The notes beneath the pieces are model-generated. The model was not told the DNA's origin. It saw only the letters and a list, made by a program, of their open reading frames with translations, and made no database searches. A program made the position numbers and the translations under genes. A stretch of 64,000 bases of DNA, from IMG/VR virus record IMGVR_UViG_3300027573_000779, positions 144,934 to 208,933 of that record. One strand, written 5' to 3'. Positions 21,925-56,632 of this stretch are shown here, in pieces (the stretch's first letter is position 1; each line of letters opens with the position of its first letter).

Positions 21925-22131
21925 TTAAGACCCATTATCAAGGTAACTTATCAAAACATCATTCTGTGCTTGGTCCTTTACTTGGTCCCAAATTGAGTCA
22001 TGAATTGGCCAAATTACGTTCCGAACTTGGTTCTCAACTTGGTCTGGAGTCTGGCCTTTAATTTGGCTTCTCATATGCCACATTTGGCTTCTGACGTGCT
22101 GTTGCCAAATTTGAACCTTTAAAGCATCCAT
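21925..22131 (-). CDS. QVWD-repeat mini-protein
   Basis: DQVENQVRN...IWDQVKDQ; DNA contains acttggtcccaaa. Confidence 0.75.
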   Translation of the reverse strand: MDALKVQIWQQHVRSQMWHMRSQIKGQTPDQVENQVRNVIWPIHDSIWDQVKDQAQNDVLISYLDNGS

Positions 22132-26923: not shown

Positions 26924-27217
26924 CTAAGTGTTAAAGTTTTTATCGTCTTCGGCTTCTTTCTGAGACTGGTTCCGAATTTGACTCCCGATTTGTTCCCAAA
27001 TTTGTTCTCCAATCTGATTCTTGAAGTGTTTCCAAGTATATAGCCAAATATGATTCCCGGTTTGTTCCAATACTTGGTTATTAATGCTATCAGATACTTG
27101 CGATATCTGCTCCCAAACCGGCTCTTTTTTAAAGACAATAATATCCATAAACACATCTGCTGCCATTTCGGGTGCAATCATGATTGTCATAAACAACCCC
27201 GTCAATAACAGCAACAA
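26924..27217 (-). CDS. QVWD-repeat mini-protein
   Basis: VWEQI...NQIGEQIWEQIGSQIRNQ. Confidence 0.7.
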   Translation of the reverse strand: MLLLLTGLFMTIMIAPEMAADVFMDIIVFKKEPVWEQISQVSDSINNQVLEQTGNHIWLYTWKHFKNQIGEQIWEQIGSQIRNQSQKEAEDDKNFNT

Positions 27218-32502: not shown

Positions 32503-32963
32503 TCAAAATGAGTTTTTGGTAGTTACAAAAACTTGTTCCATAATTTGGAGTCGAACCTGTTCTTGGGTTTGTTCCCAACCTCTTTCTAATTGGTCCCAAA
32601 CTTGGTTTCCAACTTGGTTTCCAATTTGATTGCTAAAGTGATACCTAATTTGATTTAGAATTGTTAAATATTTTTTATCCATTTCACAAACAGGTCTAAG
32701 ACAAAAACCATACCGAATGCTAAAACTAATATTAATATAATGTACATTCATTCAACTAAACTGTTGATTTGGTGCTCAATTTGGTAGCCAATTTCTGCCC
32801 ACATTTGGTTTTGAGTTTGGTCCCAAACTTTGTTTTCTATGGTTTGATGCCCAATTTGCTTAGAAATTTGAAGTCTTATTAAGTCCAAAGTATCTGTTAA
32901 GACTTGGCACTGAAACCGGTACTGGTCCCTAATTTGGTCTTTTGTTTTAAATCTCTTCAACAC
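32503..32963 (-). CDS. Two tandem QVWD-repeat mini-proteins (32748..32963, 32503..32751)
   Basis: NQIGNQVGNQVWDQ; KVWDQTQNQMWAE. Confidence 0.7.
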
Positions 32964-33833: not shown

Positions 33834-34259
33834 TTAAAAATCAAGTCGATTGCTCAAGCCGCTCCTAAAAATTTCACTTACAATTTGGTCCCAAATTTGC
33901 CCCTTAACTTGGTTCCAAGTTTGTCCTCCAATTTGGCTCCCAACTTGTTTCCAAACTTGCTCCCAGACTTGGTCCCCAACTTGGCTCCAAACTTGGTCTA
34001 TAATCCTTTCTTTAATTATTTGGGTCATAAAGGCTTAAATTTGGTCCCAAATTGCGTCCTCAAGTTGTTTCCGAAGGTTGTCCCAAAGTTGTTCCCTAAG
34101 TGGATTCCAAACTTGTATAACCTGCATCCAAATTGGGTCCCAAACCTGTTCATCAAGCTGACTTTTAACTTGGTCCCCAACTTGGTCCCAAATAATCTTA
34201 CGAATCTCAATATCGGTTTGGTACCAATCCTCCGATAATTTGTCTAGCATCATTTTCAT
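33834..34259 (-). CDS. Two tandem QVWD-repeat mini-proteins (34035..34259, 33834..34028)
   Basis: DQVWSQVGDQVWEQVWKQVGSQ; IWDQVGDQVKSQLDEQVWD. Confidence 0.8.
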
Positions 34260-34581
34260 TTATTAAAACTTTTTTAAAAATCAATCACAAAAAGAAACTA
34301 AGGAATTCTTGGTGGCAGTGGTAAAACAATTCCTAATTTAGTAAGGGCTTGTTCATCTGTATTGTTCAACCCGTTATAAATCACTTTTGTAGCTATATAA
34401 AGACACTCGGCTTGTGTCCAATCTGGAAACCTTTTCTCTAAAGAATCACAAAATCTATCCCTTAATTCTTCAACAGGTATGGGATTAGATTTAGAAACAA
34501 ATGTAAAAGCAATTTTGAAAACCACGTCTGCTAAAATTTCAGAATTATCACTTAAATCTTTTAAAATTTTTGGTGAAATTT

Positions 34582-34797
34582 TCATAACCATATTTGCTCA
34601 AGAACTTGGTTCCGAACTTCCATGAAAACGTCATTCCTTATTTGTTCCCTAGATGGGTTTCCAACATGCTTCATAACTTGGCTCCCAATCTCAGTTCGGT
34701 CCCCAACTTGGTCCATAACGTGGTCCCAAACTTGGTCCATAACGCGGTCCCAAACTTGGTCCACAACTTGATACTGAATTTTGGTGACTAAGCTCAA
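34582..34797 (-). CDS. QVWD-repeat mini-protein
   Basis: QVVDQVWDRVMDQVWDHVMDQVGD. Confidence 0.8.
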   Translation of the reverse strand: MSLVTKIQYQVVDQVWDRVMDQVWDHVMDQVGDRTEIGSQVMKHVGNPSREQIRNDVFMEVRNQVLEQIWL

Positions 34798-35132: not shown

Positions 35133-36128
35133 TTAATAGTCCTGATTTAAAATCTTGACCGACAGTGATTTACCAAGAATTGGGGAATATTTGGGCGTTA
35201 TTGGTCGCAAAACAATCCCCTCTGCCTTGCGCTCTTGTCCTGTAGATGTGAGATAAATAGCCTTGTTAGCTTCTTCCTGAAGCCGCGCCATGGTCCAAGT
35301 ATCATCAAATGTAAAAGGTTCACTAACAGGAATAACCACAGGAATTTGCAATTGGTTGCATAACTCATTTATTTCCTGCCAGTTATACCATTTGCCAGTA
35401 TCAAATTCTTTAACATTAAAGACAAACATCTGAAAACTGTTCAGGCCCAATGGGTTACCTTGAATTTTGCCCCCGCAAGCCTCTGCTTGAATAGCAATGT
35501 TTTTACCCAACTCTTTAAGCTTAGAAGTTAGATTATATTGGTCTGCAATCTTCCAAAAGCCGGTCCCTTCTTTTTGCTCCAGCCGCCGACTGCAAACGCG
35601 AACTTCACCGTTTTCATAAATCACAGTCATTGAAGAACCGTCAGCTTTGATAGTTAAATAACAAAGTTCATTCCTAAACTCTTCTAAAATCTCTGGATAG
35701 TTTTGAATGTTTTCTTCGTCTGTAATTGAGATTAAATGAGTAGGAAAAGAACCCTTGGCGTCTCCATTAACAGAAGAATCAATAGGTTTGTCGTATTTTA
35801 AAATACCTAAAGCTTCCGAAACGTCCGAACCTTCTTCAACCTGATAGTTATAGCTTGGAATGATAGTTAAAGGGCAAACTAAACCCTGAGAAGGAGAGCC
35901 GCGAAACTTGGCGTTCCAGACACGATATTTTTGCCTTTCTAAAAAACTAAAATAAGAATTCGCGCTAGGAACAATAGAGTCAATACGAATAAACACCACT
36001 AAATCGCCGTTTTTATATTCTCCCTTCTTAACCACAACAGGCCATTCTTTAATTTTGGCGACTTCAAGAGAGTCGGCGTTGAAATGTGGTTGGACGCTAT
36101 GAATTCGTTCAATTGTGGCTAATTTCAT
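35133..36128 (-). CDS. ATP-dependent RNA ligase (Rnl2/DRB0094-like)
   Basis: N-terminal LATIERI...HFNADSLE; TDEENIQN; motif I KADGSS; CSRR; QAE..G..IQGN; EGIV; KILN. Confidence 0.92.
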   Translation of the reverse strand: MKLATIERIHSVQPHFNADSLEVAKIKEWPVVVKKGEYKNGDLVVFIRIDSIVPSANSYFSFLERQKYRVWNAKFRGSPSQGLVCPLTIIPSYNYQVEEGSDVSEALGILKYDKPIDSSVNGDAKGSFPTHLISITDEENIQNYPEILEEFRNELCYLTIKADGSSMTVIYENGEVRVCSRRLEQKEGTGFWKIADQYNLTSKLKELGKNIAIQAEACGGKIQGNPLGLNSFQMFVFNVKEFDTGKWYNWQEINELCNQLQIPVVIPVSEPFTFDDTWTMARLQEEANKAIYLTSTGQERKAEGIVLRPITPKYSPILGKSLSVKILNQDY

Positions 36129-37018: not shown

Positions 37019-37243
37019 TTATTTTTGGTCCCAAACTTGGTCCTCAACTTGGTCCCAAACTTGGCCCTGAACTTGGTCCCAAACTTGGTCCCGAACTTGG
37101 TCCCGAACTTGGTCCCGAACTTGGTCCCGAACTTGGTCCCGAACTTGGTCCCAAACTTGGTCCCAAACTTGGTCCCAAACTTGGTCCCGAACTTGGTCCC
37201 GAACTTGGTCCCAAACTTGGTCCTCAACTTGACCCTCAATCAT
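37019..37243 (-). CDS. Archetypal QVWD-repeat protein, 17 x (Q-V-[WRE]-D)
   Basis: MIEG(QVxD)17QK; same frame and strand as all diverged paralogs. Confidence 0.8.
37025..37233. repeat. 12-bp tandem array, 17 copies (+ strand AACTTGGTCCC[A/G])
   Basis: Direct reading. Confidence 0.97.
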
Positions 37244-38913: not shown

Positions 38914-39102
38914 CTAGTTTATTTTTAGGTCTCTAACTTGGTCCCAAATTTGTCCCACAACTTGGCTTCTAAATTGGTCCTGTATTTGGCTTTGGCCCCA
39001 AATTTGTTTCTTGGTTTCATGCCCAACTTGGTCCCAAATTTCGCTCCAAATTTGGTCCCAAACTTGGTCCCGAACTTGTCTTTTTATTAAATTACTATTC
39101 AT
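38914..39102 (-). CDS. QVWD-repeat mini-protein
   Basis: [20 protein letters not shown]. Confidence 0.8.
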   Translation of the reverse strand: MNSNLIKRQVRDQVWDQIWSEIWDQVGHETKKQIWGQSQIQDQFRSQVVGQIWDQVRDLKIN

Positions 39103-39395: not shown

Positions 39396-40764
39396 CTAGT
39401 TTATTTTTATGTTCCAAATGTGTTCCACAACTTGGCCTTCTACTTCTTCCCCAACTTCTTCCCAAACTTGGCCCCAAACTTGTTCAAAAACCTGTTCCCA
39501 AACTTGACCTTCTACTTGGTCCCAAATTTGTTCCCCAATATGGTTATGAACTTGGCTCCTAATTTGGTCATCAATTTGCTTCCTAATGTTATCTTTCGTC
39601 ATTAACGCGCCGATTTAAATTCTGGTATTTCCATCCAATGCGCCCGAACTGAAGGTAAAGCTATTGTACTCGTATAAGTTAAATCATTGTCCGTCATAAC
39701 AATAATTTTTGTGCCTTGCTGCTCCCATCTTCCAGTAATTTGCTGCCATCCCTCTTTCCGTTTAAGAGACCAAAGAACGGTGGTTTTTTGTGGAGGTTTC
39801 TCTTTCTCGAAATTCTTCCAAATCATAAAAACGATGATAATAAAAGTTTTTAAAATGTCAATGCTCAAGCGCCGCAGGGCTTAAGCCCTTTTTTTAAAAC
39901 GCCGAGGGGCTAAGCGCCATAGGGGGTTCTGTGTTCCAAGCTTGGTGCCAAATTTGGTTTTCTACTTGGCTCCCAATCTGTTCCCAAACTTGGTCCCAAA
40001 TCTGTTCCCAAACTTGGCCCCAAACTTGGCCTTCTATTTGGTTCCAAATTTGGTCCCCAATATGGTGGTCCCCAATATGGTCCCTAACTTGGTCCATAAC
40101 TTGGTTCTGAATGTTGTCTCTTGTCATGTTCTTAAGGAGGGCTAGGTTTCACTAAAACATTTATTTGAAATTTGTATCATAACTTCATGCCGTAATTGGT
40201 TCCAGTGTTCCTGACCTTGGTAAACTTGGTCCCCAACTTGGTTCCAAACTGCTTGGTTCCCAACTAGGTTTTGAATACTCTTAAAAGTTTGCCCCAAAAC
40301 GCCATTATATAACTGATGATGTAACTGATTCTCAATCTTATTTCTAGTCATGTGTCTCTAAAACTTGGTCCCCAACTTGGGTCCTAACTTGGTTCCGAAT
40401 TTCTTCTAAAGATGGATGTAAAAAACGTCGCCCCCAAAGTAACGGGTGCGAAGTCGGGTCTTGGATTTGATTATAAATTTGCTTCAAAATTTGGTCCCAA
40501 GTTTGGCCCCAAACTTTTGCGAACACCTGACTCTTAATCTCATCTTTGGTCATGTTTTTAGTAAATTTTGCTGCACCGAAAAACTTGGTACAAAATTTCA
40601 TTTTTAATTTCATACCTTATTTGTGGGTCCCAATAATCCTGAATTTGGTTATGAACCTGCTTGCTAATTTGGTTGCCAGCTTGGTTGAACAACGGTCTTA
40701 CAACAAGTTCCGAAGTTTGACCCCGAACAAAAGCATCCTGATTCTCAATCTTATCTTGGGTCAT
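39396..40764 (-). CDS. Cluster of five QVWD-repeat paralogs (40558..40764, 40344..~40553, 40142..40351, 39894..40127, 39396..39602) interrupted by one unrelated ORF
   Basis: Shared N-termini MTQDKIENQ, MTKDEIKSQ, MTRNKIENQ, MTRDNIQNQ, MTKDNIRKQ. Confidence 0.8.
39861..39918 (-). repeat. Stacked junction elements fused to a promoter -35 box; block duplicated at 44097-44167
   Basis: taaaatgtcaatgctc..gccgcagggcttaa..cttttttt..aaacgccg.aggggcta at both sites. Confidence 0.8.
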
Positions 40765-41488
40765 ATTTTATTAAAAAAGGTAAATACAATTTAATACAAA
40801 TCTCAGTAGCCACTTTTTCATCAAAACAATATGTAATCGTTCGTTTTTCAAAAGCTTTGTCTAATTCTTTTTCAGCTTCATCTACTTGTTTGTTTAAATC
40901 TTCTTTTTTGTAATTAGCTGGATTAGTTTTAATATCTATTAACCGCGCCGCAAAATCAGGGTTATATTTTTTGACATTAACGGGAAAAATCCCGTCAGTA
41001 AAAAAATACTTACCAGCCCAAGCAAGCCTAAATAATTGCACCGCATTCTTAAAAGAATAGCCAAACTCTTCTACCGCCTTGTGCCGCTTTGAACCTAAAA
41101 GCCCAGTCCGCTCGCCGTTCATCAATCTTCTTTCCCCAAACATGTAGCCTTTTAAAGATTTATATAAATGTTTACTATCAAGCAAAGAAAATTTATGAGT
41201 AAGGATTAACGCCCATTCTGGAGAGGGTTTAAAATTCGGCGCTTCATCTGTAAAAAGCAATTCTAAAGCCTGAGTGTTAGTCTTTCTTAAGCTGGATAAA
41301 AAATGTCGAAGCTCAAAAAGAAAAGTATCATCATTTTCTTTTTTAATATCCTGATGGTCGAACCTTTGGAGACCAATAATCTTTTCGGGTTCTTCGTTTA
41401 AAAAACAACCCCTAGCGTCCAAGTCGGACGCTGGAGTATTTAAACCGTAAGCATGACTTCCACCAAGAGTTGAGTAAATAATCTTCAT
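40751..41488 (-). CDS. DNA-pol-beta superfamily nucleotidyltransferase (RlaP/YcgL-like)
   Basis: GGSHAYGLNTPASDLDARG, NTQALELLF. Confidence 0.88.
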   Translation of the reverse strand: MKIIYSTLGGSHAYGLNTPASDLDARGCFLNEEPEKIIGLQRFDHQDIKKENDDTFLFELRHFLSSLRKTNTQALELLFTDEAPNFKPSPEWALILTHKFSLLDSKHLYKSLKGYMFGERRLMNGERTGLLGSKRHKAVEEFGYSFKNAVQLFRLAWAGKYFFTDGIFPVNVKKYNPDFAARLIDIKTNPANYKKEDLNKQVDEAEKELDKAFEKRTITYCFDEKVATEICIKLYLPFLIKYDPR

Positions 41489-43176: not shown

Positions 43177-44082
43177 TTAAGCCGCACTGACAAATCGTCC
43201 ATTTTCATCGCGCTTATTGTAATAAGTCACCTTAACCTTACCAAGCTTGTTTTTTTCGCTTGCAAACCTGCCAAAGGAGTCGCGCTTAGGGTTGAAAGCT
43301 TTAAGCCTGTTCCCTGTCACTTTACCAGAATACAGCCTTTCTGTCAAGATGTTGCCATTTTCCCATTTTCCAACCACCGAAACAGGAAGATATCTCCAAG
43401 CTCTGCCTTTGGACTTATTTAAATCTTGCGGGATTGCAACAACATCCATTGGATTAACTTTGACAACAACAACTTTAGTTTTGTTGTTTATAATACCCCC
43501 ATAATAAGGCAAATAGGAATAAGAACAAAAATGTAGCCCATTTGAACAAAGCCTGATTCTGCTTGGGTCTACTTCATTGGGGTCCATTTTGACAATCTTG
43601 CCAATAGCATGTTTCAAATGAGTGCCATCAGGAGACTTGTTATAGGAAGTCATGTCTTCTCTCAGCATCTTATAAGCAAGAAAACACCCGTCATCAGTAA
43701 TAGGCATCTCTCCATTTTCAAGAAAATCGTACAGTTCGTTTCGTGCATCTTCTGAAGGATTTTTATAGAGATTAGCCAAAAACCTCACATAAGGTTCATA
43801 AGGGAAACCTCCTTGGACAAACTGTAAAATGCGCTTAACCAAGGTCCCATGAATTTCCTGTCCGTCATAATAAATCGCGCCGCTGTGGACTTTCACTTTG
43901 CCGTAGCTATGCTTTAGGATAGCGCCGGGAAGGTCCATTGCTTCAATCAGCTTCTTGTAATTCTTCTGTCTGTAAAACTCAAGAGCCTTTTGCCAATTTG
44001 GGTGGGTTGAATTGATGGAGTGCCGTTTACCATCTACCACCACAACCAGCACGTTGCCGTTAAAAATTGCTGAAACGTTCAT
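43177..44082 (-). CDS. rIIB: rIIB-like protein
   Basis: FLANL..NPS...ELYDFL...PITDDGCFLAYK...CSNGLHFCS..Y...VKVNP.DVV.IP.D...K.R. Confidence 0.9.
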   Translation of the reverse strand: MNVSAIFNGNVLVVVVDGKRHSINSTHPNWQKALEFYRQKNYKKLIEAMDLPGAILKHSYGKVKVHSGAIYYDGQEIHGTLVKRILQFVQGGFPYEPYVRFLANLYKNPSEDARNELYDFLENGEMPITDDGCFLAYKMLREDMTSYNKSPDGTHLKHAIGKIVKMDPNEVDPSRIRLCSNGLHFCSYSYLPYYGGIINNKTKVVVVKVNPMDVVAIPQDLNKSKGRAWRYLPVSVVGKWENGNILTERLYSGKVTGNRLKAFNPKRDSFGRFASEKNKLGKVKVTYYNKRDENGRFVSAA

Positions 44083-44164: not shown

Positions 44165-44564
44165 CTAAAAAATGTCAAAAGTTTGGTCCCAAATACGGTC
44201 CAAAACTTGGTCTGCAACTTCATCTCTAAATTCACTAATGTCCCAAATTATAAGCGCAATCTGGCCCTTCACACTCCCCTCAACTTGGTCCGCTATTTGT
44301 CTTACGAGTGTGTCTTTAATTTTTTGGACCTTGTTATTTACTCTCATAAAAAATCTGGTTCCAATGGTTTAGAAGGTATTCCCAAATTGGGTCTGCAACA
44401 TCCTCAATCGTAAGTGCAATACTGTCTCTTTGGTCCCAAATCAGGTCTCTTACTGACTGCCCAACGTGGCTTACAATTTGGTCAACAAGGTGGTCGTCAG
44501 ATTCATGAATTCGATTTCTAATTTGATAAAGAGTTTCGCTCTCAATTTTGGTTAAATATATCAT
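44165..44564 (-). CDS. Two QVWD-family mini-proteins inserted between rIIA and rIIB
   Basis: QIADQVEG...ADQVLDRIWDQ; VDQIVSHVGQSVRDLIWDQ. Confidence 0.7.
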
Positions 44565-46666
44565 TTTTCCCTTATATAAGCCAAAAGGTCTTTTTGAATG
44601 TCTTCTTCCTCTTTCTCAAAACCGTAACTTTCCATTGCGTGTTTGATATAAGAATACAAAGGATAGTGTTTTAAAACATCGCTCTTAAGGCTCGCAAAAT
44701 CAACACTGGGCGTTTTAGTGCTTTCAGTCGCAAGCATGAAACCTTTCTTTGCCGAATTAATTACATTAATAATAGCAAGTTTTTGGCGTGCCTTTTTGGA
44801 AGCAACCTCTAGCTTAATATAGGCTCTCAAAAGCTCCGCAAAGGGAGAATCTTTTTTCACGCCAGACCATTTATACTCGCCCAAATAACTTTCCTCTATG
44901 CTGTCAAAAGCCTCTTTGTCTGCAATAAGCTGAGAAAGGTCTTCTTTGGCTATAGTCGCCTCAACCGCTTGAATTAAGTAATCCTTAAGAGTAACCCATT
45001 CGCTCAAATCTTCTTTAGCCACCAAAGCTTTCTTAAAACCATAGACTACAGGAACAGGATAATTAAGAGAACGTAAGGTGTCTAAAACCGACTGAATAAA
45101 TTTTGACCGTTTTTTGTCGTTTTCTTCCCAACAAACTTCATACCTGTCAATTTCAACATAGACCCCGCCCTCTTCAAGGTCTACTTCTGCAATATCCCAA
45201 AAATCACTTTTAGCCCTGCCATCAGGATTAAATACAAAGACCTTTTTGGAATTCTTCTCATTATTACCATTATAGGTATTGGGGGGCACAGGAAGCTCTT
45301 TAACCGACTTAAGTTGGGGAACCAAGTCTTCAAGCCCCATCTCTTTAAGTAGTAGCTCCCGATATTCGGGCTTAGTTGCCACAATCATCCAAACATATTC
45401 ACAATAAGTTTCTTTAAAATGATAGGAAACCCTGCTCTTACACCTTGTTGCGTCTTTAATGTAGACTTGCAAGTCTTTCTTAAAAGGCAATCTGTCTACA
45501 ATCTCTAAAGATACCTTTTTGCGCCCGTTCCTATACCAACGCTCAATGAAAACATCATTGGGCTGTAGATTATTACGCTTATAAAAGTCTTCAGGAACCA
45601 TAAAGTTAGTCCCCTTGACAGACTGACCGCCAAACTGAAGGTCTAAACCCTCAATAATATAGCGCAAGTTGCTGCTATAAGCTCCATCTAGAAACAAATC
45701 AGCCCAAATTTCTCTGGCGTTCCAAAGAGTTCTGGCACTGGCAAATTTAGCCTTTACCGTCTCTTCAAATCCACCAATAATTTCTCGACATAAAAGCAAA
45801 ATAGCATTCTTGGTCTTATCTGTATATTGTAAACCTTCCCGATTAACCGCAATATCAAGGTCGCCAATATTAAAATGAAACACTAAACCAGACTGAAGAA
45901 GACGTTCTAGTTTAGCATCAAGACTGGTAAAAACACTGGCGCGAATGGGATATGCAACCTGCCCCATTACCGCATAAGAAGTGGTTTGATTCTTATACAT
46001 CACCCAATTCTTACCACTAAAAGCCTCTTCCAGTGGAATTTGGTTATAGTAACGATTCCCTATAATTTTTGGCGCAACCTTCCAAAACCTAAAAACATCC
46101 TGTGCTTTTAGTCGAAATTCTTCAAAATCAAATTCATTAACAGGGACAATAATTTCAATCCCATCTGGCTCTTCAGTGGGGCTTTTATCCATTTGGGCAA
46201 TACGCCCTTCCTGTGAAGGGTCAATGAAAGCAGTGTAAGTAGTCTTAACGCCTTCCTGATAACTTACAATAGAAAAACTGTCCCCGTAAGCAAAACCCGA
46301 CTTGGAACCAATCCCCAACATCCCAATAGTCGCATTGGAATTTCTTTTCGTTGATTTGCAATACTTTACATAGGTATTGGTTACATCTTCATCGCTGAGG
46401 CCAGTCCCAAAATCGCGCACTCGAAACTCTGGTTCCAAAACATTAGGCAAGTGAACTTGGATAGGAAGGTCCCCTTTTCCAGCCTCTACATTAGCGTCAT
46501 AAGCATTACAGCTATATTCCCTGATAACAGCCTTGGTCTTATCCTCATAAAGACTGTTCCGTAGAATATGAAAAAGCATTGAAAAGTCTTGGGCATCAAT
46601 CCCAAAACTATTCACTTTCAAATCACCTTCTGTTTCAAGAATCCGGCTCTGTTGTGTTAAAATCAT
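44561..46666 (-). CDS. rIIA: rIIA-like protein (GHKL ATPase)
   Basis: LY.DK..AVIREYSCNAYDA, RDFGTGLS, STKRNSN..IG.LGIGSKS.FAY. Confidence 0.92.
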   Translation of the reverse strand: MILTQQSRILETEGDLKVNSFGIDAQDFSMLFHILRNSLYEDKTKAVIREYSCNAYDANVEAGKGDLPIQVHLPNVLEPEFRVRDFGTGLSDEDVTNTYVKYCKSTKRNSNATIGMLGIGSKSGFAYGDSFSIVSYQEGVKTTYTAFIDPSQEGRIAQMDKSPTEEPDGIEIIVPVNEFDFEEFRLKAQDVFRFWKVAPKIIGNRYYNQIPLEEAFSGKNWVMYKNQTTSYAVMGQVAYPIRASVFTSLDAKLERLLQSGLVFHFNIGDLDIAVNREGLQYTDKTKNAILLLCREIIGGFEETVKAKFASARTLWNAREIWADLFLDGAYSSNLRYIIEGLDLQFGGQSVKGTNFMVPEDFYKRNNLQPNDVFIERWYRNGRKKVSLEIVDRLPFKKDLQVYIKDATRCKSRVSYHFKETYCEYVWMIVATKPEYRELLLKEMGLEDLVPQLKSVKELPVPPNTYNGNNEKNSKKVFVFNPDGRAKSDFWDIAEVDLEEGGVYVEIDRYEVCWEENDKKRSKFIQSVLDTLRSLNYPVPVVYGFKKALVAKEDLSEWVTLKDYLIQAVEATIAKEDLSQLIADKEAFDSIEESYLGEYKWSGVKKDSPFAELLRAYIKLEVASKKARQKLAIINVINSAKKGFMLATESTKTPSVDFASLKSDVLKHYPLYSYIKHAMESYGFEKEEEDIQKDLLAYIREK

Positions 46667-47466
46667 GACTTCAGAATACCAAATCTTTTTTGTGACGCAA
46701 GAATTTTTTAAAAAATTTTTAAAATTTATCGGGAACTAATTCGAAAAACATTGGGAGACCGCTTAGACTGCTTGGAAATAGCTTGAATGTGTTCTTGCGC
46801 AAGGCTCTTCCCCTCGGAAGTATTGGGAAAAGCGCCTTGAATTGTGTTATCTTGTTTATCTAGAACAAGTAACATCTTTTTTTTACTCTTTTTCATTACA
46901 AAGTCTACTAAACCACTCGATAATCTCAAAACCAATTTTATCAAGCTCGCGCTGTTCCATCTGGCACTTTCCTATCAGAGTTTCAAGTTGTTTGGCTTTC
47001 TTTTTAGCCTCTCGCGGACTTATATTATCTTCTTCGGGTTTGATTTTATTAATTTCCCGTTCAAGAAAATCAATACTCTTGTTTAGTTCATCAAGTTTCT
47101 TTAATATTTGTTTGGCTTCTAAGACCTTTTTCATCAATACCTTTTTTTTGTTACAAGGTATTATAATTATCTTAGATTTAGTTTTCTATCTTTTCTTGAA
47201 AACAAGTATTAATTTTATCGCCTATAAGAATCTGGCTCTCCTGTCTCATTAAAAACATTGCTTCCTCTCCATCAGTTGTTGTTCCGTTCATTAAGCTAAT
47301 ATTTAAATCTTTAGACATGTCTACCTGTTGGCGAATTGATGTAGCTATGTCTACGAAAACCCTTTCTGATAAGCTTCCTTGAACATAAGTTATGTGAAAC
47401 ATAAAATAAGAAAAACAAGCACAAATTTCTTTATGCTTGTTTTTTTGCTCTTAATTTTAATTTGAT

Positions 47467-47778
47467 TCAGTCCGCCACTTTCCGAACCATTTCTTGGAAG
47501 TAATCGTACTCCCGAACCCTGCCCACTTCCCACAACCCCTTATCAAGAGTGATAGGGGCGTGCTCTTCATGGACAACGGTCGCTGACTTTTCCAGAGAGA
47601 GAAGAATTCTCTCGCCTTCCTGAATCAGTTCAAACTCGTCCTCTGCTTCGAGAATGTGACTGTGACCAGACTCGCCATGTGCTACCACATAATGTCTTAG
47701 TTTTGTGACCTTGGCTTCCTTGGAAGGAGGTTGGGTCACCCTTTTGAACAGAACGTCGCCTTGTTGTGCGGTTTTCAT
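47467..47778 (-). CDS. Conserved His-rich partner of DUF6745
   Basis: QQGDV...AHGESGHSH...HEEH..I.L..G......REY. Confidence 0.75.
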   Translation of the reverse strand: MKTAQQGDVLFKRVTQPPSKEAKVTKLRHYVVAHGESGHSHILEAEDEFELIQEGERILLSLEKSATVVHEEHAPITLDKGLWEVGRVREYDYFQEMVRKVAD

Positions 47779-47821
47779 ATATTGTTTCTCTATTATATTA
47801 CAGCTTTTTAAAAAGTCAAGC

Positions 47822-48841
47822 CTAGGTTAATTTCTCTGCATTCGTAAACCAATTACTGTTGCGCCATTTAAGGGCCGCTTCAATCGTGCTACATTCAGGG
47901 GCTACGCCCTCCAAATGCCACACTCCAACTGAAGGATTAAGCATCTTAAGATATTTGGCGTTTGGAACAACGTCTGATAAATTGACACTAAGAAGCTCAT
48001 AGTTGCCAAGCTTTTCCAAAACCTTATGACTTAAGCTTACCAACATGCGCTCAATTCCAATTTTGCGAATTAGCTCTCTCCGCTTGTCCACATTGGTTTC
48101 TTTTAAAACTTCTTTGGGATTGAGTTTTTCCGCAGGAGTTAAAACCTGTTTTGGGGACATAGCTATTCCATTCAGGAAATAAAGCTTCCAACCATCAGAA
48201 TATTCAACCGCTGGAGCTTCATCTTTGTGAAGTCGCCCTTCGCTATTGCGCCAAATTTGGGTTGGCTTGCTGGTAACAATGAGGCAGCTATCAGTAGGGT
48301 AAAAAAGGCCCAAATCCGCGCAAGCTTCAAGCTTATCGTAGTTTTTCATAACTTCAGCGTCAAATTTAACTCCAATCATCTTGTAGGCGCTTACCCACCC
48401 AAAATAATTGGAATAAAAATGACCATCAAAGTAGGGCCAGACAAAAAGCTTAATGGTATTTTTGAGCTTTGTAATAAGGTCCTCTTCTGAAAGAGGATTT
48501 TTGGACTTGAAAGTTATTTGGCTATTAATCTGTTCCCAAGTTGTTTCAAACAAGCCCCGCAAATTCTTATTTATCTCACTAAAACTGGGGCGCTTTGGAT
48601 TCCAGTTTTCATAGCCCCCCTCACTCAAAAGGCAAAAGGCAATCCAACCGCCAAAAGGACTAGAAACATGAATGACGGGGTTTTTCTTGCCCAAAATTTG
48701 CTCGCTCCATTCGCCTCCTAGCCTTTGTGCTTCGCTGGTTGGAACTTGGCGACAGTCAAGCGCCCTGTCCCGCCAGTAATTCTTGATTTCCTCAAGTTTT
48801 TTGACTTGTTCGTCAGTTAGTTTTTCGATTTTATCTGCCAT
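47822..48841 (-). CDS. DUF6745-like protein
   Basis: KIEKLT.EQ, P......GRLH....PAVEYSDGW..Y..NG, N...RR....IG.E, LKM.NPS.....E.V...C.T...AL.W. Confidence 0.8.
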   Translation of the reverse strand: MADKIEKLTDEQVKKLEEIKNYWRDRALDCRQVPTSEAQRLGGEWSEQILGKKNPVIHVSSPFGGWIAFCLLSEGGYENWNPKRPSFSEINKNLRGLFETTWEQINSQITFKSKNPLSEEDLITKLKNTIKLFVWPYFDGHFYSNYFGWVSAYKMIGVKFDAEVMKNYDKLEACADLGLFYPTDSCLIVTSKPTQIWRNSEGRLHKDEAPAVEYSDGWKLYFLNGIAMSPKQVLTPAEKLNPKEVLKETNVDKRRELIRKIGIERMLVSLSHKVLEKLGNYELLSVNLSDVVPNAKYLKMLNPSVGVWHLEGVAPECSTIEAALKWRNSNWFTNAEKLT

Positions 48842-48897
48842 ATTTTTTTAAGTTGTTCTCTAAATCTGTAGCTATGGTAACAAAACTTTTTGAAATG

Positions 48898-49499
48898 TCA
48901 ACAGTTTAGAAATTTTGAGCTTTCGTCCCAAATTTGTTCTGAAATTTGTTCCCAAGCGTCTTCAAGTCGAAAAAACTTCTCGTTCGCTATAATTTGGCTC
49001 CGAATTTGGAGATGAACTTGGTTATAAATTTCTCCTCCAATCAAACTCCGAAGTTCTATAATTTTAGTCGTCATCTGGTTCAAACGGTTCATATATTCAA
49101 GCGCCGAGAGACTATGTTGTTTTTGTGTTCATAACCGCAACTTGTTCCAAAATTGGGTTCCAAATTTGGTCCCTAAATTGGTCCCGCATTGGAGTCCAAA
49201 CTTGGTACCTAAATTGGTTCTTAATTTGGTCCCCAACTTGGTTATTAATTTTATCCCAAATTTGGTCCCCCATAATCTGAATTTTAGTATTAGCCATAAC
49301 TCTGGTTTCTTTACTAAGGGCTTAGTGTCTCCCTAAAAACTTGGTTCCAAAGCTGGTCCTCAATTTGGTGCTTGATTCGGTTTTCTATTGTGTCAATAAC
49401 TTTCCCAACTTGGTCCCAAACTTGGCTCCTAGCTTGATTCCAAAAAGCATGAGATATAATCATAGTTCTGGTTTCTTTACTAAAGTCATGCGCCGCCAT
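48898..49499 (-). CDS. Three tandem QVWD-family mini-proteins upstream of DUF6745
   Basis: GDQIWDKINNQVGDQ; WNQARSQVWDQVG; WEQISEQIWDE. Confidence 0.75.
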
Positions 49500-50467
49500 A
49501 TTAATTTGCGCAGTTTTCCTTCAGGACCATGGGGTTGATGGACGAGGCTTTTTCTTCGCCAATGCATCCGTGGAGAAGCGTGATGTCCCCCTAGACTTGG
49601 TGACTCGTGTTCAATCTTATAACCATATCCAACAATATTAGGAGACCAAAGCGCTTCTTTTTTAATTTCTCCCGTCTTAGCCTTTTTCTCGGGTCTTTCT
49701 AAAGATGCTGGCTTAATAAGTTTTGGACTGGTCCCCCAAACCATTAAAGTAAGGATTGTGGCTTGAACGGCCTTAATTAGGATTTTCTGTTCTTCTTCAG
49801 ATGAAGGAGATGGGGATTTGTCGTTTTTAATTTTTTCATATAGTTTTGGTTGGTAGAGTTCATACATTAATTCTTGAACCTTTGTCACATCTTCCCACCT
49901 ACCTTCTTTTTCAGTTAGACCAACAGTACTAATTGGCATATTAGTTGGATACCACGCGGCATAATTAACAAAACGCCCGCTATCCATTAAAAAAGGTAAA
50001 TGAAAACACAAAGTTCCCACATTTACTTCTTGTCCCAAAACAAAATCTCCTTTATCTACAAGTGAAACGCCAATAAAGGGAAATCGCCAGCCTAAATAAG
50101 ATTCAACAAATTGTGTTGGAAACACTAATATAAAATGTTTTAAAGGCAGATAAACTTCGCTAAAACTAAAATCTTGAGGAGGGACAGTCGCCACACATTC
50201 CAACAGAAATTCATGGTCAATAAAATAAGTCGGAACCTGAGTGTCTATCAAATTGTTGGTAACCGTTTTAATTACTTGGTCTGTGTCTCCTTGCAAAGAA
50301 TAAAACCATGAATTAATAATGCCTAAAACAAGACTGTAATATTTTGGGTCATAATACCCATTAGGGCAGACAATTCGTTTCGGGTAAAACAAACTAATTC
50401 TTTCTTGCGCCTTTTCGCAAAGTTCTTTGAAATGGTCCCACTCGTTTTCAAAAATTTCAATCTTCAT
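49460..50467 (-). CDS. Hypothetical phage protein with C-terminal SPRxHWRR motif
   Basis: GGHHASPRMHWRRKSLVHQPHGP...RKLIW. Confidence 0.6.
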   Translation of the reverse strand: MKIEIFENEWDHFKELCEKAQERISLFYPKRIVCPNGYYDPKYYSLVLGIINSWFYSLQGDTDQVIKTVTNNLIDTQVPTYFIDHEFLLECVATVPPQDFSFSEVYLPLKHFILVFPTQFVESYLGWRFPFIGVSLVDKGDFVLGQEVNVGTLCFHLPFLMDSGRFVNYAAWYPTNMPISTVGLTEKEGRWEDVTKVQELMYELYQPKLYEKIKNDKSPSPSSEEEQKILIKAVQATILTLMVWGTSPKLIKPASLERPEKKAKTGEIKKEALWSPNIVGYGYKIEHESPSLGGHHASPRMHWRRKSLVHQPHGPEGKLRKLIWRRMTLVKKPEL

Positions 50468-50504: not shown

Positions 50505-51143
50505 TTATTTTTGCTTCAAAATGAAGCTTAACCACTCTACCCTTGGGACAGTTGAAATTTCGCTTGCCGCAGTCCTAGGTAAAGGTTTTTTAGGCTCATA
50601 AAGAAGTCTGTGTCTGAAATTTTCGATAGGCATATTCCCTCTTTCACTGTTTAAGTCCCTATGGGCCAAAACAATATTGGTCCACTCGTCCTTTCCACCA
50701 TGGGATTTGGGTTTAACGTGTTCTAAAGAAGCTTCAGCTAAAGTTAAGATTTTACCACTATAAGCACATTTCTTGCCATAATGACGATAAGCGTTACGTT
50801 TGTTTAGTTTTAACTCCCTGAGGGCTAGACCGTTATAGTTTTTTGCCCTCATCACAATCGGCGCTCTAATAGTTCTTTTAGAGGTATGAATTGGAATGTC
50901 CCATGAACGAACCGGTAAATTCATCCAAGCTTCTAAATTAACTGGTTCCCAATAGCTAACTTTATCGAAATTCGGTCTGCCATCATCATCTAATTCAAAT
51001 TCAATATCAATCCCTTGAGAGGCCATATTGCCATCTTCTGAAGTAGAAAAAAGATTGGTAAGAGCCTTCTTTATTGTCGCGGTGCCTACAACAATATAAA
51101 GACTATTAAGAACAAGAACAAGCTGTTCATTTAAAAGGTTCAC
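50505..51143 (-). CDS. HNH endonuclease
   Basis: VLVLN, CAYSG, SLEHVKPKSHGG...WTNIV.....N..RGN. Confidence 0.88.
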   Translation of the reverse strand: MNLLNEQLVLVLNSLYIVVGTATIKKALTNLFSTSEDGNMASQGIDIEFELDDDGRPNFDKVSYWEPVNLEAWMNLPVRSWDIPIHTSKRTIRAPIVMRAKNYNGLALRELKLNKRNAYRHYGKKCAYSGKILTLAEASLEHVKPKSHGGKDEWTNIVLAHRDLNSERGNMPIENFRHRLLYEPKKPLPRTAASEISTVPRVEWLSFILKQK

Positions 51144-51805
51144 TAAAAAGAATTGTGTCGTTAACTGACCAAAGTAAAGGACTTATATCATTACCGAAAC
51201 CAACTTTTCTTACAATATCACCCCAATCAGAAACTAAAAATGACTGATAAATCTGCGTATCAATTTTTCTTCTTACTACTTTTATCTGGCTATACGGATG
51301 ATTCCAAACTCGGTCGCGAAATATGTTTCTATTCATCGTAAATTTATTCAAAAAATTCATTCAAATAAATTGCATCGTTAAGCCTCCAACTTAAAAGAGT
51401 TAAATTGTGCCCAAGATAGGTTCTTATTTCAATGTCGTGCCAAACAGAAGTTGATAATGACTTTAAAATTTGTGTATGAATTTCTTCTCTGATTCTTTGT
51501 ATCTGTATATTCGGATGAACCAAAGTTTGGTTTAAAACCGTGTCTATGTTGTTCATTGTCTATTCAAAAACTTTACTAAATACAATTCCCTCCTCAATAG
51601 CCCAAACTAGACGATGATAAGAAAAAGGAATGGTCTTTTTGATTTCTAAACATAAATTTGAGTGAATCTCTGAGTTTTGTTGCACAAGAATTTTGTTTGT
51701 TGCCAGTTTTTCTATCTGGCTATTCGGATGAGTCCAAACTTGGTTCCAAATTATGTTTGTTTCCATTATCGTAATCAACTTTATCTTTGATAACCTTGGT
51801 GCCAA
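51127..51805 (-). CDS. Tandem triplet of HPxxQI mini-proteins (diverged QVW-family branch)
   Basis: RVWNHPYSQI / QTLVHPNIQI / QVWTHPNSQI with matching C-termini. Confidence 0.7.
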
Positions 51806-52655: not shown

Positions 52656-53078
52656 TTACACCCAAACACTTTCTACGGGAACGGTACTATCAGAAATCCC
52701 TTCCTGTTTTAAATATTCTCTAATATTCTTCGAGCCTTCCGGGTTGTGACTGTGAACGTAAATTTCTGGAAGTGGCACTTTTGTCTTTCTACAATAACGA
52801 ACCAACCATCTGGCGCAATCAAACCCCGTTAACTCAGTAATCTTGGTATAGTCTATAGGTTTCTTGTGTATTTGCGCAATTTCCCATTCCATAATTGCAG
52901 ACCAATCTAAATCATGGTCTAAACTTACTACTTTAGGAATGCCATTTCTAAGTATAAAATCAATAAAATCCTTACCATTTCGCAAAACGACCCAAGGAAC
53001 AGTTTTTAAATGTTCGGGATATGCAATCCAATAAACCGCCTCAATACCAGAACGTTCATCGTCTAAAAACAAATACAT
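52656..53078 (-). CDS. Cyclic-phosphate-processing receiver-domain protein
   Basis: LFLDDER, VSLDHDL, TGFDCARWL, VHSHNPEG..NI. Confidence 0.88.
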   Translation of the reverse strand: MYLFLDDERSGIEAVYWIAYPEHLKTVPWVVLRNGKDFIDFILRNGIPKVVSLDHDLDWSAIMEWEIAQIHKKPIDYTKITELTGFDCARWLVRYCRKTKVPLPEIYVHSHNPEGSKNIREYLKQEGISDSTVPVESVWV

Positions 53079-56419: not shown

Positions 56420-56632
56420 TCATAAAATACTAGTCTCAATTTGGGCTTCAACTTGGGTCCGAATTTGGCTCAAAAGCCGGTTTCCAGAATACTGAGTTCC
56501 CCAAACTTCTCCTCGAACTTGTCCCTGAACTTGGTTGAAAACTTGACTCACAATCTCATTCTTAACCTTGCCAAGAATTCGCTCAAAAGTGCTGTCCCAA
56601 ATTTGGTTTGGAGATTTTAGGTCATCGGACAT
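56420..56632 (-). CDS. QVWD-family mini-protein
   Basis: NQIWD...SQVFNQVQGQVRGEVWG...SQIRTQVEAQI. Confidence 0.75.
   Translation of the reverse strand: MSDDLKSPNQIWDSTFERILGKVKNEIVSQVFNQVQGQVRGEVWGTQYSGNRLLSQIRTQVEAQIETSIL

Follow-up and report, generated by a model that had tools for sequence, protein, structure and literature searches.

A DUF6745 gene is found on the minus strand of IMG/VR virus record IMGVR_UViG_3300027573_000779, in a region of 64,000 nucleotides (positions 144,934 to 208,933 of the record) that is termed the window here. The putative protein matches Pfam PF20530 with 52.9 bits (cut-off 27, E-value = 3.7e-14), and the same hit appears at 53.7 bits in a six-frame search of the genome. 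It is the only copy in the 208,933-bp record. Three small genes consisting of tetrapeptide repeats (termed minis) lie directly upstream on the same strand, and a gene for a His-rich protein lies directly downstream, 44 bp from DUF6745 (Table 1). These features had been noted in a first-pass annotation, and all are confirmed. However, the minis are not limited to the three neighbours. At least 21 such genes of 40–97 aa lie between window positions 21925 and 56632, all on the minus strand, and none lies in the other 145 kb of the genome. The 74 aa open reading frame included in the interval of the first-pass annotation has no relative in the other loci and is not part of the module.

Table 1. 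Features of the DUF6745 region and the free-standing repeat genes (window coordinates)
Position	Strand	Feature	Size	Remarks
21925–22131	-	Mini	68 aa	Outermost family member on this side
26924–27217	-	ORF, probable family member		8 units in its C-terminal half
32503–32963	-	Two minis (32503–32751, 32748–32963)		
33834–34797	-	Three minis (33834–34028, 34035–34259, 34582–34797)		One non-repeat ORF between the last two
37019–37243	-	Mini	74 aa	Almost entirely 17 units of DQV[W/R/E/Q]; 12-bp array 91% self-identical, varying only in the 4th codon
37257–37382	-	Short mini	about 41 aa from first Met	Begins MNADQVWGQVWGQVRNQVGDQVWNQV...; coordinates approximate
38914–39102	-	Mini	62 aa	
39396–40764	-	Run of five minis (39396–39602, 39894–40127, 40142–40351, 40344–40613, 40558–40764)		Share N-terminal cap MT(K/R/Q)D(N/K/E)I; one non-repeat ORF (39602–39868) between the first two
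44165–44564	-	Two overlapping minis (44165–44347, 44334–44564)		Between rIIA and the rIIB-like gene; repeat units degenerate
47178–47402		ORF	74 aa	Not part of the module
47467–47778	-	Conserved partner of DUF6745	103 aa	Invariant QGD, GE-x-GH-x-H and H-x-EH motifs
47822–48841	-	DUF6745 protein, tract-less form	339 aa	N-terminal helical domain (about residues 1–66, ending in VSSP); low-confidence non-repeat linker (about 67–135); C-terminal alpha/beta domain starting at FVWPYFDG
48898–49092	-	Mini c	64 aa	Five xQ[VI]x units (NQVH LQIR SQII ... EQIS EQIW)
49112–49297	-	Mini b	61 aa	About 9 units (DQIW, NQVG, DQIK, NQFR, YQVW, DQFR, DQIW ...)
49314–49499	-	Mini a	61 aa as listed; more likely 49 aa	Probable start at ATG 49463
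56420–56632	-	Mini	70 aa	Outermost family member on the other side

The repeats are far beyond chance: the pattern Q[VI]..Q[VI]..Q[VI] occurs 49 times in the window, all on the minus strand, against 0.02 expected from shuffles. The probable ATG of mini a overlaps the stop codon of the preceding 335 aa gene as ATGA, and the same junction sequence TTAGTAAAGAAACCAGA precedes minis a and b.

The first-pass annotation also stated that DUF6745-type proteins often carry an internal tract of tetrapeptides after an SP motif, and this is correct. Of 120 homologues, many carry xQ[VL]x runs of up to 29 units, and close relatives differ in repeat number (four sequences with identical flanks have 6–28 units). 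In tract-bearing relatives, 9–90 units of the form x-Q/S/A/R/N-V/L/I-x are found. In a 12-sequence alignment the runs lie exactly between the invariant S61-P62 and DFVWPYFDG. The window protein displays a non-repetitive stretch of about 70 aa at this position, with 0 units by a lag-4 measure and only EQIN-SQIT in register by eye. Read by eye, hydrophobic residues keep a period of 4 over about 6 units (I, L, F, W, then I, I), which fits a decayed tract. The protein is otherwise collinear with family members, with invariant residues S61, P62, L204, H205, N250, R254, E256, R259, K260, H309, E311 and R327. An AF2 model gives a pLDDT of 85.5 overall but 51–72 over residues 71–135.

The 103 aa partner lies directly beside DUF6745, upstream or downstream, in 58 of 67 IMG/VR loci and in most MAG loci, and a fused partner+DUF6745 cluster is present in the ESM Atlas. 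It matches phrog_27831 and probably binds metal. No Pfam, PDB, PADLOC or NCBIfam match to the partner was found. The 74 aa and 335 aa open reading frames, as well as the partner, show no Pfam match at E-values up to 10. For the DUF6745 model, Foldseek gave no PDB hit at E < 0.001, VIA-align gave a best Z of 3.9, and the AFDB returned only other DUF6745 models. Profile searches of PDB sequences with DUF6745 and with the partner gave only chance hits. A nucleotide search of GenBank phages with 8 kb of the region found no match, and a tblastn search with a mini also found none, possibly because of the low-complexity filter.

Internal tracts and free repeat genes in other phages

About 190 loci were compared. 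Tract-bearing DUF6745 genes show no true free repeat genes in their flanks (0 of 51 in IMG/VR and 0 of 17 in MAG contigs). A generic period-4 detector flagged a few open reading frames, but on inspection these are low-complexity false positives (poly-D, R-rich, L-rich) or a second DUF6745 gene. One locus that looked tract-less is a tract gene broken by frameshifts. In another, the DUF6745 hit was a 220 aa all-repeat protein that matched the tract columns of the HMM, and the HMM was therefore rebuilt from the C-domain only. Every DUF6745 found beside, or in the same record as, free repeat genes is tract-less. In the two sets of loci ascertained by DUF6745, 0 of 68 tract-bearing and 6 of 50 tract-less genes have free repeat genes (hypergeometric, one-sided p about 0.005); for IMG/VR alone the numbers are 0/51 against 4/14 (p about 0.0015). 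A second locus set was ascertained by the repeat pattern, which inflates the tract-less-with-minis class. Of importance, tract-less does not imply minis: most tract-less DUF6745 genes, for example in MAG contigs and in Microcystis phage Ma-LMM01, have none, so the scaffold can work without any repeat.

Free repeat genes were not found without DUF6745 in any complete genome examined. All 5 mini-only records that are at least 90% complete hold one DUF6745 gene elsewhere, and all of these are tract-less. The same holds for the genome studied here and for the 369-kb phage G015, giving 7 of 7 complete mini-bearing genomes with one DUF6745 gene with no internal tract, whereas only 10 of 50,697 GenBank phage records matched the window protein. 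The partner is present in 4 of the 5 complete split genomes searched (G015 and four of those records).

The split state changes 12 times on the DUF6745 tree, and at least 9 of these changes are forced by well-supported branches. The window protein sits inside a tract-bearing clade at 95* support. Phylogenetically independent pairs go the same way 7.6 times and the other way 0 times out of 9 (sign test p about 0.008). Split examples exist with different unit types as well (QV, RV, KV, NL), e.g. xRVx, DKVx and ENLx units.

In G015 the gene is literally split. A free N-domain open reading frame, 50% identical to the N-domain of its sister phage L009, ends just after DSPLKCW. Nine minis follow, then an open reading frame made of a degenerate tract plus the C-domain, then about 35 more minis. 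L009 carries a 73-unit internal tract with the same SQVx unit and the same TCA CAA GTT codons. Thus in this phage the internal tract and the free repeat genes arose from each other by fission of the gene. The minis of the window, however, use codons (GAC CAA GTT NGG) that differ from those of the nearest tract-bearing relatives, so direct descent is shown only for G015.

One alternative is that the minis are an independent family of small helical phage proteins which share genomes with tract-less DUF6745 only through common descent of large phages. Only 3 of the at least 21 minis of the window are adjacent to DUF6745 and the rest are scattered over 35 kb, in two other phages some clusters lie 16–44 kb from DUF6745, and fragmentary mini-bearing contigs often show no DUF6745 (5 of 19 do). 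But the exclusivity with the internal tract recurs in at least 9 independent lineages and with four or five unit types, the minis of G015 sit between the separated N and C domains, the sister pair L009/L010 shares its unit and its codons, and DUF6745 is present in all complete mini-bearing genomes examined. This alternative is therefore considered improbable.

The minis are real genes. They have ATG starts, conserved N and C caps, and overlapping stop/start codons. An invariant cap leucine is encoded by 4 different codons, and between phages the units differ by synonymous codons while the peptide motif is kept. Within one genome, third codon positions are almost invariant (GAC 50 against GAT 0, CAA 139 against CAG 16) and the first positions of codon 4 vary. 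In addition, the unit is quasi-palindromic (CCAA..TTGG), so antisense frames are also open. The almost invariant third positions and the quasi-palindromic unit might point to expanding 12-bp DNA repeats with a DNA- or RNA-level role, or with none, the open reading frames being incidental. This is very unlikely, as no DNA motif is shared between phages, all copies lie on the coding strand (49 against 0 in the window and 334 against 0 in G015), the caps show synonymous variation at an invariant residue, and in the fused form the same units are part of a long conserved protein.

The first-pass annotation had proposed either that the tract was externalised into trans-acting subunits or that the minis are donors or decoys for the tract. 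Externalisation of the tract is supported by the comparisons above. The second, in which silent cassettes recombine into a DUF6745 tract as in antigenic-variation systems, is not supported and is regarded as very unlikely. The 12-bp units are shared among the genes of one genome and could recombine, and repeat number does differ between close relatives, but genomes with minis have no acceptor tract, no tract-bearing gene has cassettes nearby, and the minis have their own start codons, translational coupling and caps under protein-level selection. No RVT_1 match was found in the complete record, while the controls matched, so a diversity-generating retroelement is excluded. Contigs from four metagenome runs showed the same sequence in three samples and no repeat-number variants, which counts against the explanation favoured below; apparent joints are cross-matches between paralogous minis.

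Predicted docking and possible roles of the module

A structure prediction places mini b in the cleft between the N and C domains of the DUF6745 protein with an ipSAE of 0.66 (best control 0.00). This mark was reached by 58 of 80 solved complexes and 2 of 110 mismatched pairs. The predicted contacts are DUF6745 residues 4–28, 62–66, 127–171 and 196–227. Action in trans rests on this one in silico complex, which is a model's confidence only, and the job differs from the calibration of the method.

The explanation favoured here, with moderate confidence, is that DUF6745 and its partner form a two-gene accessory module that is widespread in phages. In the usual form, the DUF6745 protein carries a hypervariable tract, predicted to be helical, between its two domains. 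In the phage studied here the tract has been lost from the protein, only a decayed relic remains, and the same kind of repeat is encoded instead by the minis. It is inferred that the tract has a function of its own, as a binding or recognition surface whose fourth residue is kept diverse, and is not a mere spacer. It is also inferred that a mini-protein can supply this function in trans by lying in the cleft of DUF6745, and one scaffold could thus be armed with many alternative variable helices at once. The module most likely works in phage-host conflict, as counter-defence or host takeover, but this is the weakest step, as it rests on analogy with mycobacteriophage Tweety gp54 and on the position of the module among rII and RNA-repair genes; no function is known for DUF6745 or its partner. 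A further reading, which is doubtful but possible, is that the repeat element is an exchangeable specificity module with a barcode of variable fourth residues, repeatedly broken out of the gene by large phages and amplified into libraries of 20 to more than 45 small trans-acting subunits. This would be a combinatorial, innate repertoire for counter-defence or host targeting, of a kind not described for viruses.

The predicted docking fits an enzyme-substrate pair as well as it fits a scaffold-ligand pair. In such a substrate model, similar to ribosomally made and modified peptides, DUF6745, perhaps together with its partner, modifies the repeat peptide; the tract is a fused substrate and the minis are separate precursor peptides with a conserved leader and follower and a variable core. 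The minis of G015 have conserved ends (MNNKLINDQ... and ...RSQLELHE) around variable cores and form an array of about 44 genes beside one DUF6745. The C-domain has invariant polar residues (from H205 to R327 of those listed above), the partner has an invariant H-x-H ... H-x-EH motif, and fused and split forms replace each other. However, no similarity to any known modifying enzyme, recognition element, protease or exporter was detected in DUF6745, the partner or the other neighbours tested. In addition, the tract of the fused form is internal and not at an end, the minis of the window lack a uniform leader, and nothing points to export from a phage-infected cell. The substrate model appears unlikely but remains open.

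Comparison with other repeat-bearing phage proteins

Tweety gp54 (with Che8 gp57 and PMC gp51) is the closest described analogue. In gp54, unique N- and C-terminal parts flank 15–48 tandem tetrapeptide units encoded by a 12-bp repeat, and repeat number differs between close relatives. Third codon positions are invariant while first and second positions of the variable codons, there the third and fourth, change, which the authors read as selection for variation (PMC2884959). Changes in repeat number tune gp54 to neutralise the Phrann gp29/gp30 defence (PMC9262239, citing Dedrick 2017). The tract-bearing DUF6745 proteins and the window minis show the same architecture and codon signature. However, gp54 is not a homologue: it has no Pfam DUF6745 hit and hhalign gives a probability of 0.1. 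The gp54 unit is A-A-x-x, not x-Q-V-x, no 103 aa partner is evident next to gp54, and no split or trans form has been described for it. The spacer model proposed for gp54, in which the repeats set the juxtaposition of the N and C domains, cannot explain free-standing repeat proteins.

Bordetella phage BPP-1 Bbp36 variable region 2, cited as an analogue by the Tweety authors (PMC2884959), is part of a non-essential phage protein with an internal tandem repeat whose copy number varies between isolates. Its unit is an octapeptide, GTATAGYR. The protein has a DUF7666 N-domain and DUF4774-type repeats and is not DUF6745.

Gp174 of the cultured phage Ma-LMM01 is a tract-less DUF6745, and the adjacent gp175 is the 103 aa partner (hhalign probability 99.2%). 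Thus the two-gene core module is present in a cultured phage, although neither a tract nor minis are found near the gene. No paper mentioning DUF6745 was found, and the tract, the partner and the split form were not found in any published description. Variable tetrapeptide-repeat proteins have so far been known from one experimental case, gp54; DUF6745 with its partner is a much larger, unrelated family with the same kind of tract, found in hundreds of environmental phages. The recurrent move of the tract into mini-genes also explains a class of very abundant hypothetical open reading frames of 60–80 aa in large phages, of which the Atlas holds about 100 all-viral clusters, the sizes listed being 61–270 members.

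The DUF6745 locus, its internal tract and its partner

The complete 208,933-bp virus record, of which the window is the last 64 kb, comes from a phage found in groundwater and freshwater-sediment metagenomes. GC is about 38% and nearly all genes lie on the - strand. The order of genes around the DUF6745 open reading frame, together with the other features discussed here, is listed in the table. DUF6745 is confirmed by Pfam (E = 3.7e-14) and is single-copy in the genome. The 335-aa ORF upstream of the repeat genes shows no match in Pfam, PHROGs, PADLOC or NCBIfam and no relative in the 67 IMG/VR DUF6745 loci searched with it. Its last codons share the junction sequence that precedes the second of the three small repeat genes (mini b). 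The first (mini a) probably starts at ATG 49463, which overlaps the preceding stop as ATGA, and minis a and b are preceded by the same 17-nt junction. Promoter-like sites precede DUF6745 and the 103-aa gene, and a terminator-like hairpin follows the latter, but these are consensus matches only.

Coordinates of the features discussed
Record	Coordinates	Strand	Feature
Window	49460-50467	-	335-aa ORF
Window	49314-49499	-	Small repeat gene, mini a
Window	49112-49297	-	Small repeat gene, mini b
Window	48898-49092	-	Small repeat gene, mini c
Window	47822-48841	-	DUF6745 gene
Window	47467-47778	-	103-aa partner gene
Window	47178-47402	-	74-aa ORF
Window	37019-37243	-	Mini-gene of 17 near-identical units
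Window	35133-36128, 40751-41488, 52656-53078		RNA ligase with a PHA02142 OB domain, RlaP nucleotidyltransferase and cREC_REC domain protein
Window	44561-46666		rIIA gene
Window	43177-44082		rIIB-like gene (weak DUF7666 hit)
Window	51127-51360, 51344-51556, 51560-51805		Three consecutive paralogous small genes (70-81 aa)
Same genome, outside the window	115240-131646		Single open frame of 5,469 aa
G015	336599-336916		Free-standing N-domain ORF
G015	337117-339569		Nine mini-genes
G015	339621-340622		ORF of degenerate tract followed by the C-domain
G015	to about 349,970		About 35 more minis
G015	357153-357395		A last mini
G015	357681-358055		Partner gene
L013	9299-10597		Tract-bearing DUF6745 gene broken into three frames
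L260 (Microcystis phage Ma-LMM01)	6111-7642		gp175-gp174

The first-pass annotation had suggested that DUF6745-type proteins often carry an internal tract of tetrapeptides after an SP motif, and this is correct. A search of 5.8 billion proteins gave 159 homologues, many of which carry runs of up to 29 xQ[VL]x units. In alignment these runs sit exactly between the invariant S-P and DFVWPYFDG, whereas the window protein has about 70 non-repetitive residues there. Among the 67 IMG/VR loci found through the protein, tract length is bimodal: there is either no tract, or one of 9 to 73 units, and it reaches 90 units in a second locus set (see below). The unit types are SQVx, QQVx, SQLx, NQ[IV]x, [DA]SVx, [SR]AVx and [DN]NLx. 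Within one tract, codons 1-3 are nearly uniform and the fourth codon varies at its first or second base, but between phages the same residues use different synonymous codons. Thus the peptide motif is what is conserved, each tract is homogenised by repeat turnover, and diversity is kept at the fourth residue. This is the codon-position signature described for Tweety gene 54 (PMC2884959). A 29-unit tract is modelled by AF2 as three long helices, at low confidence. In one locus (L013) the tract-bearing gene is broken into three overlapping frames by frameshifts inside the tract, which is either assembly error in the repeat or real slippage-type on/off switching.

The 103-aa partner lies directly beside DUF6745, on either side, in 58 of 67 loci and in most MAG loci, and a fused form exists. 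Its invariant residues are QGD, GE-x-GH-x-H, H-x-EH and a C-terminal D. These are inferred to form a probable metal site. No family, structure or defence model was found to match it. Of interest, at least 8 dispersed chromosomal copies of a tract-bearing DUF6745 gene with its partner occur in one Candidatus Marinacidobacterales MAG (5.87-Mb and 0.66-Mb contigs). The flanks look alike, which suggests carriage on a repeated mobile element or on prophages.

The free-standing repeat genes

The repeat genes are a large family and not only the three situated upstream of DUF6745. At least 21 ORFs of 40-97 aa, made mostly of x-Q-[VI]-x units, lie between window positions 21925 and 56632. All are on the - strand, and none lies in the other 145 kb of the genome. 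The three-unit pattern occurs 49 times against 0.02 expected. Codons of these mini-genes are extremely uniform (GAC 50 against GAT 0, CAA 139 against CAG 16, GTT 81 of 89 Val, fourth codon NGG), while the genome at large uses both synonyms. The units of the 17-unit mini-gene differ only in the fourth codon. The 12-nt unit GACCAAGTTTGG is quasi-palindromic (CCAA..TTGG); antisense frames therefore stay open and read SQTW-like repeats, which produces many spurious overlapping ORFs on the + strand. The ESM Atlas holds about 100 all-viral clusters of such 60-80-aa proteins. The three consecutive paralogous small genes of 70-81 aa share a pattern (…W.HP.SQI… …L.W.…F/L.E.F.) but are not of the tetrapeptide type. 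These may be very diverged relatives or another mini-family.

Co-occurrence of tract and mini-genes, and a split gene in phage G015

A pattern scan of IMG/VR for QxW..Q..QxW gave 120 further loci. Loci were classified with a C-domain HMM and a period-4 detector, and every exception was inspected. No tract-bearing DUF6745 has a true free repeat gene in its flanks, and every DUF6745 next to free repeat genes is tract-less. For loci with mini-genes only, the whole record was searched. All 5 records that are at least 90% complete hold one DUF6745, and each is tract-less; fragments hold one in 5 of 19 cases. In the two sets ascertained through DUF6745 alone, free repeat genes are found with 0 of 51 tract-bearing and 4 of 14 tract-less genes in IMG/VR, and with 0 of 17 tract-bearing and 2 of 36 tract-less genes in GTDB genome contigs. 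Combined, the one-sided hypergeometric p calculated here is about 0.005. However the converse does not hold. Most tract-less DUF6745 genes have no minis, including gp174 of the cultured cyanophage Ma-LMM01, whose neighbour gp175 is the partner. This core module lies inside the DNA-replication gene block of Ma-LMM01, next to uracil-DNA glycosylase.

On a tree of 94 C-domains the split state needs 12 changes, at least 9 of them forced by well-supported branches. The window protein sits inside a clade of six tract-bearing genes at 95* support. Phylogenetically independent pairs give 7.6 concordant and 0 discordant of 9 (p about 0.008), but this figure is inflated by the pattern-ascertained loci. 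Split arrangements also exist with other units, i.e. xRVx in loci L043 and L044, DKVx in L218, ENLx in L256 and possibly xATY in L033.

Of importance, the gene is caught in the act of fission in a complete 368,758-bp phage, G015, the record of locus L010 (also L204 and L205). The free-standing N-domain ORF is 50% identical to the N-domain of L009 and ends just after DSPLKCW. In the C-domain ORF the first 132 residues are a degenerate tract with no N-domain, followed by the C-domain from FVYPYFDCQFW. About 45 tandem mini-genes are embedded between these two ORFs and the partner gene. The sister of this gene (100* support, same metagenome) is L009, which has 73 internal units of the same SQVx type and the same TCA CAA GTT codons. 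The G015 minis share end caps (MNNKLINDQ... and ...RSQLELHE) and have overlapping stops and starts. An invariant cap leucine is encoded by four codons, which is protein-level selection. The pattern occurs 334 times on the coding strand and 0 times on the other. Three other readings, that the minis are an independent family, that they are donor cassettes (an alternative raised in the first-pass annotation), or that the arrays are DNA-level repeats, are each contradicted by specific results among these: the synonymous codon differences between phages, the exclusivity of tract and minis, the repeated changes on the tree, the restriction to one strand, the G015 layout and the cap leucine codons. 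A diversity-generating retroelement is excluded because the genome has no reverse transcriptase.

Predicted docking and related proteins

A three-chain prediction (DUF6745 with its alignment, the partner, and mini b) gave an ipSAE of 0.66 against 0.00 for the three controls. That mark was reached by 58 of 80 solved complexes and 2 of 110 mismatched pairs, although the calibration fits this type of job only roughly. In the model the mini touches DUF6745 residues 4-28, 62-66 (the SP motif), 127-171 and 196-227, which form the cleft where the tract would leave and re-enter the protein. Together with the exclusivity, this makes a trans-supplied tract the best reading. It also argues against a pure spacer role, which was the idea proposed for Tweety gp54 (PMC9262239), because a free peptide cannot space two domains. 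A substrate or modified-peptide model, however, fits the caps, the array, the invariant polar residues and the metal motif equally well and is not excluded. The first-pass observation, that a DUF6745 gene nearly lacking its internal repeat is surrounded by free-standing repeat genes, is confirmed, and its suggestion that the tract may have been externalised is supported by comparative evidence and by one in-silico docking, without a function yet having been shown.

No paper mentioning DUF6745 was found. Tweety gp54 is an analogue and not a homologue, and BPP-1 Bbp36 has octapeptide repeats on a DUF7666 protein. Variable tetrapeptide-repeat proteins are already known in phages, but no published description of a split, multi-gene architecture was found.

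RNA-repair-type genes are interleaved with the minis in the window, i.e. the RNA ligase, RlaP and the cREC_REC protein, and rIIA and the rIIB-like gene lie in the same block. This setting and the Tweety analogy point to phage-host conflict, but that step is inference. The repeat scan also showed, upstream of the window, the single open frame of 5,469 aa.
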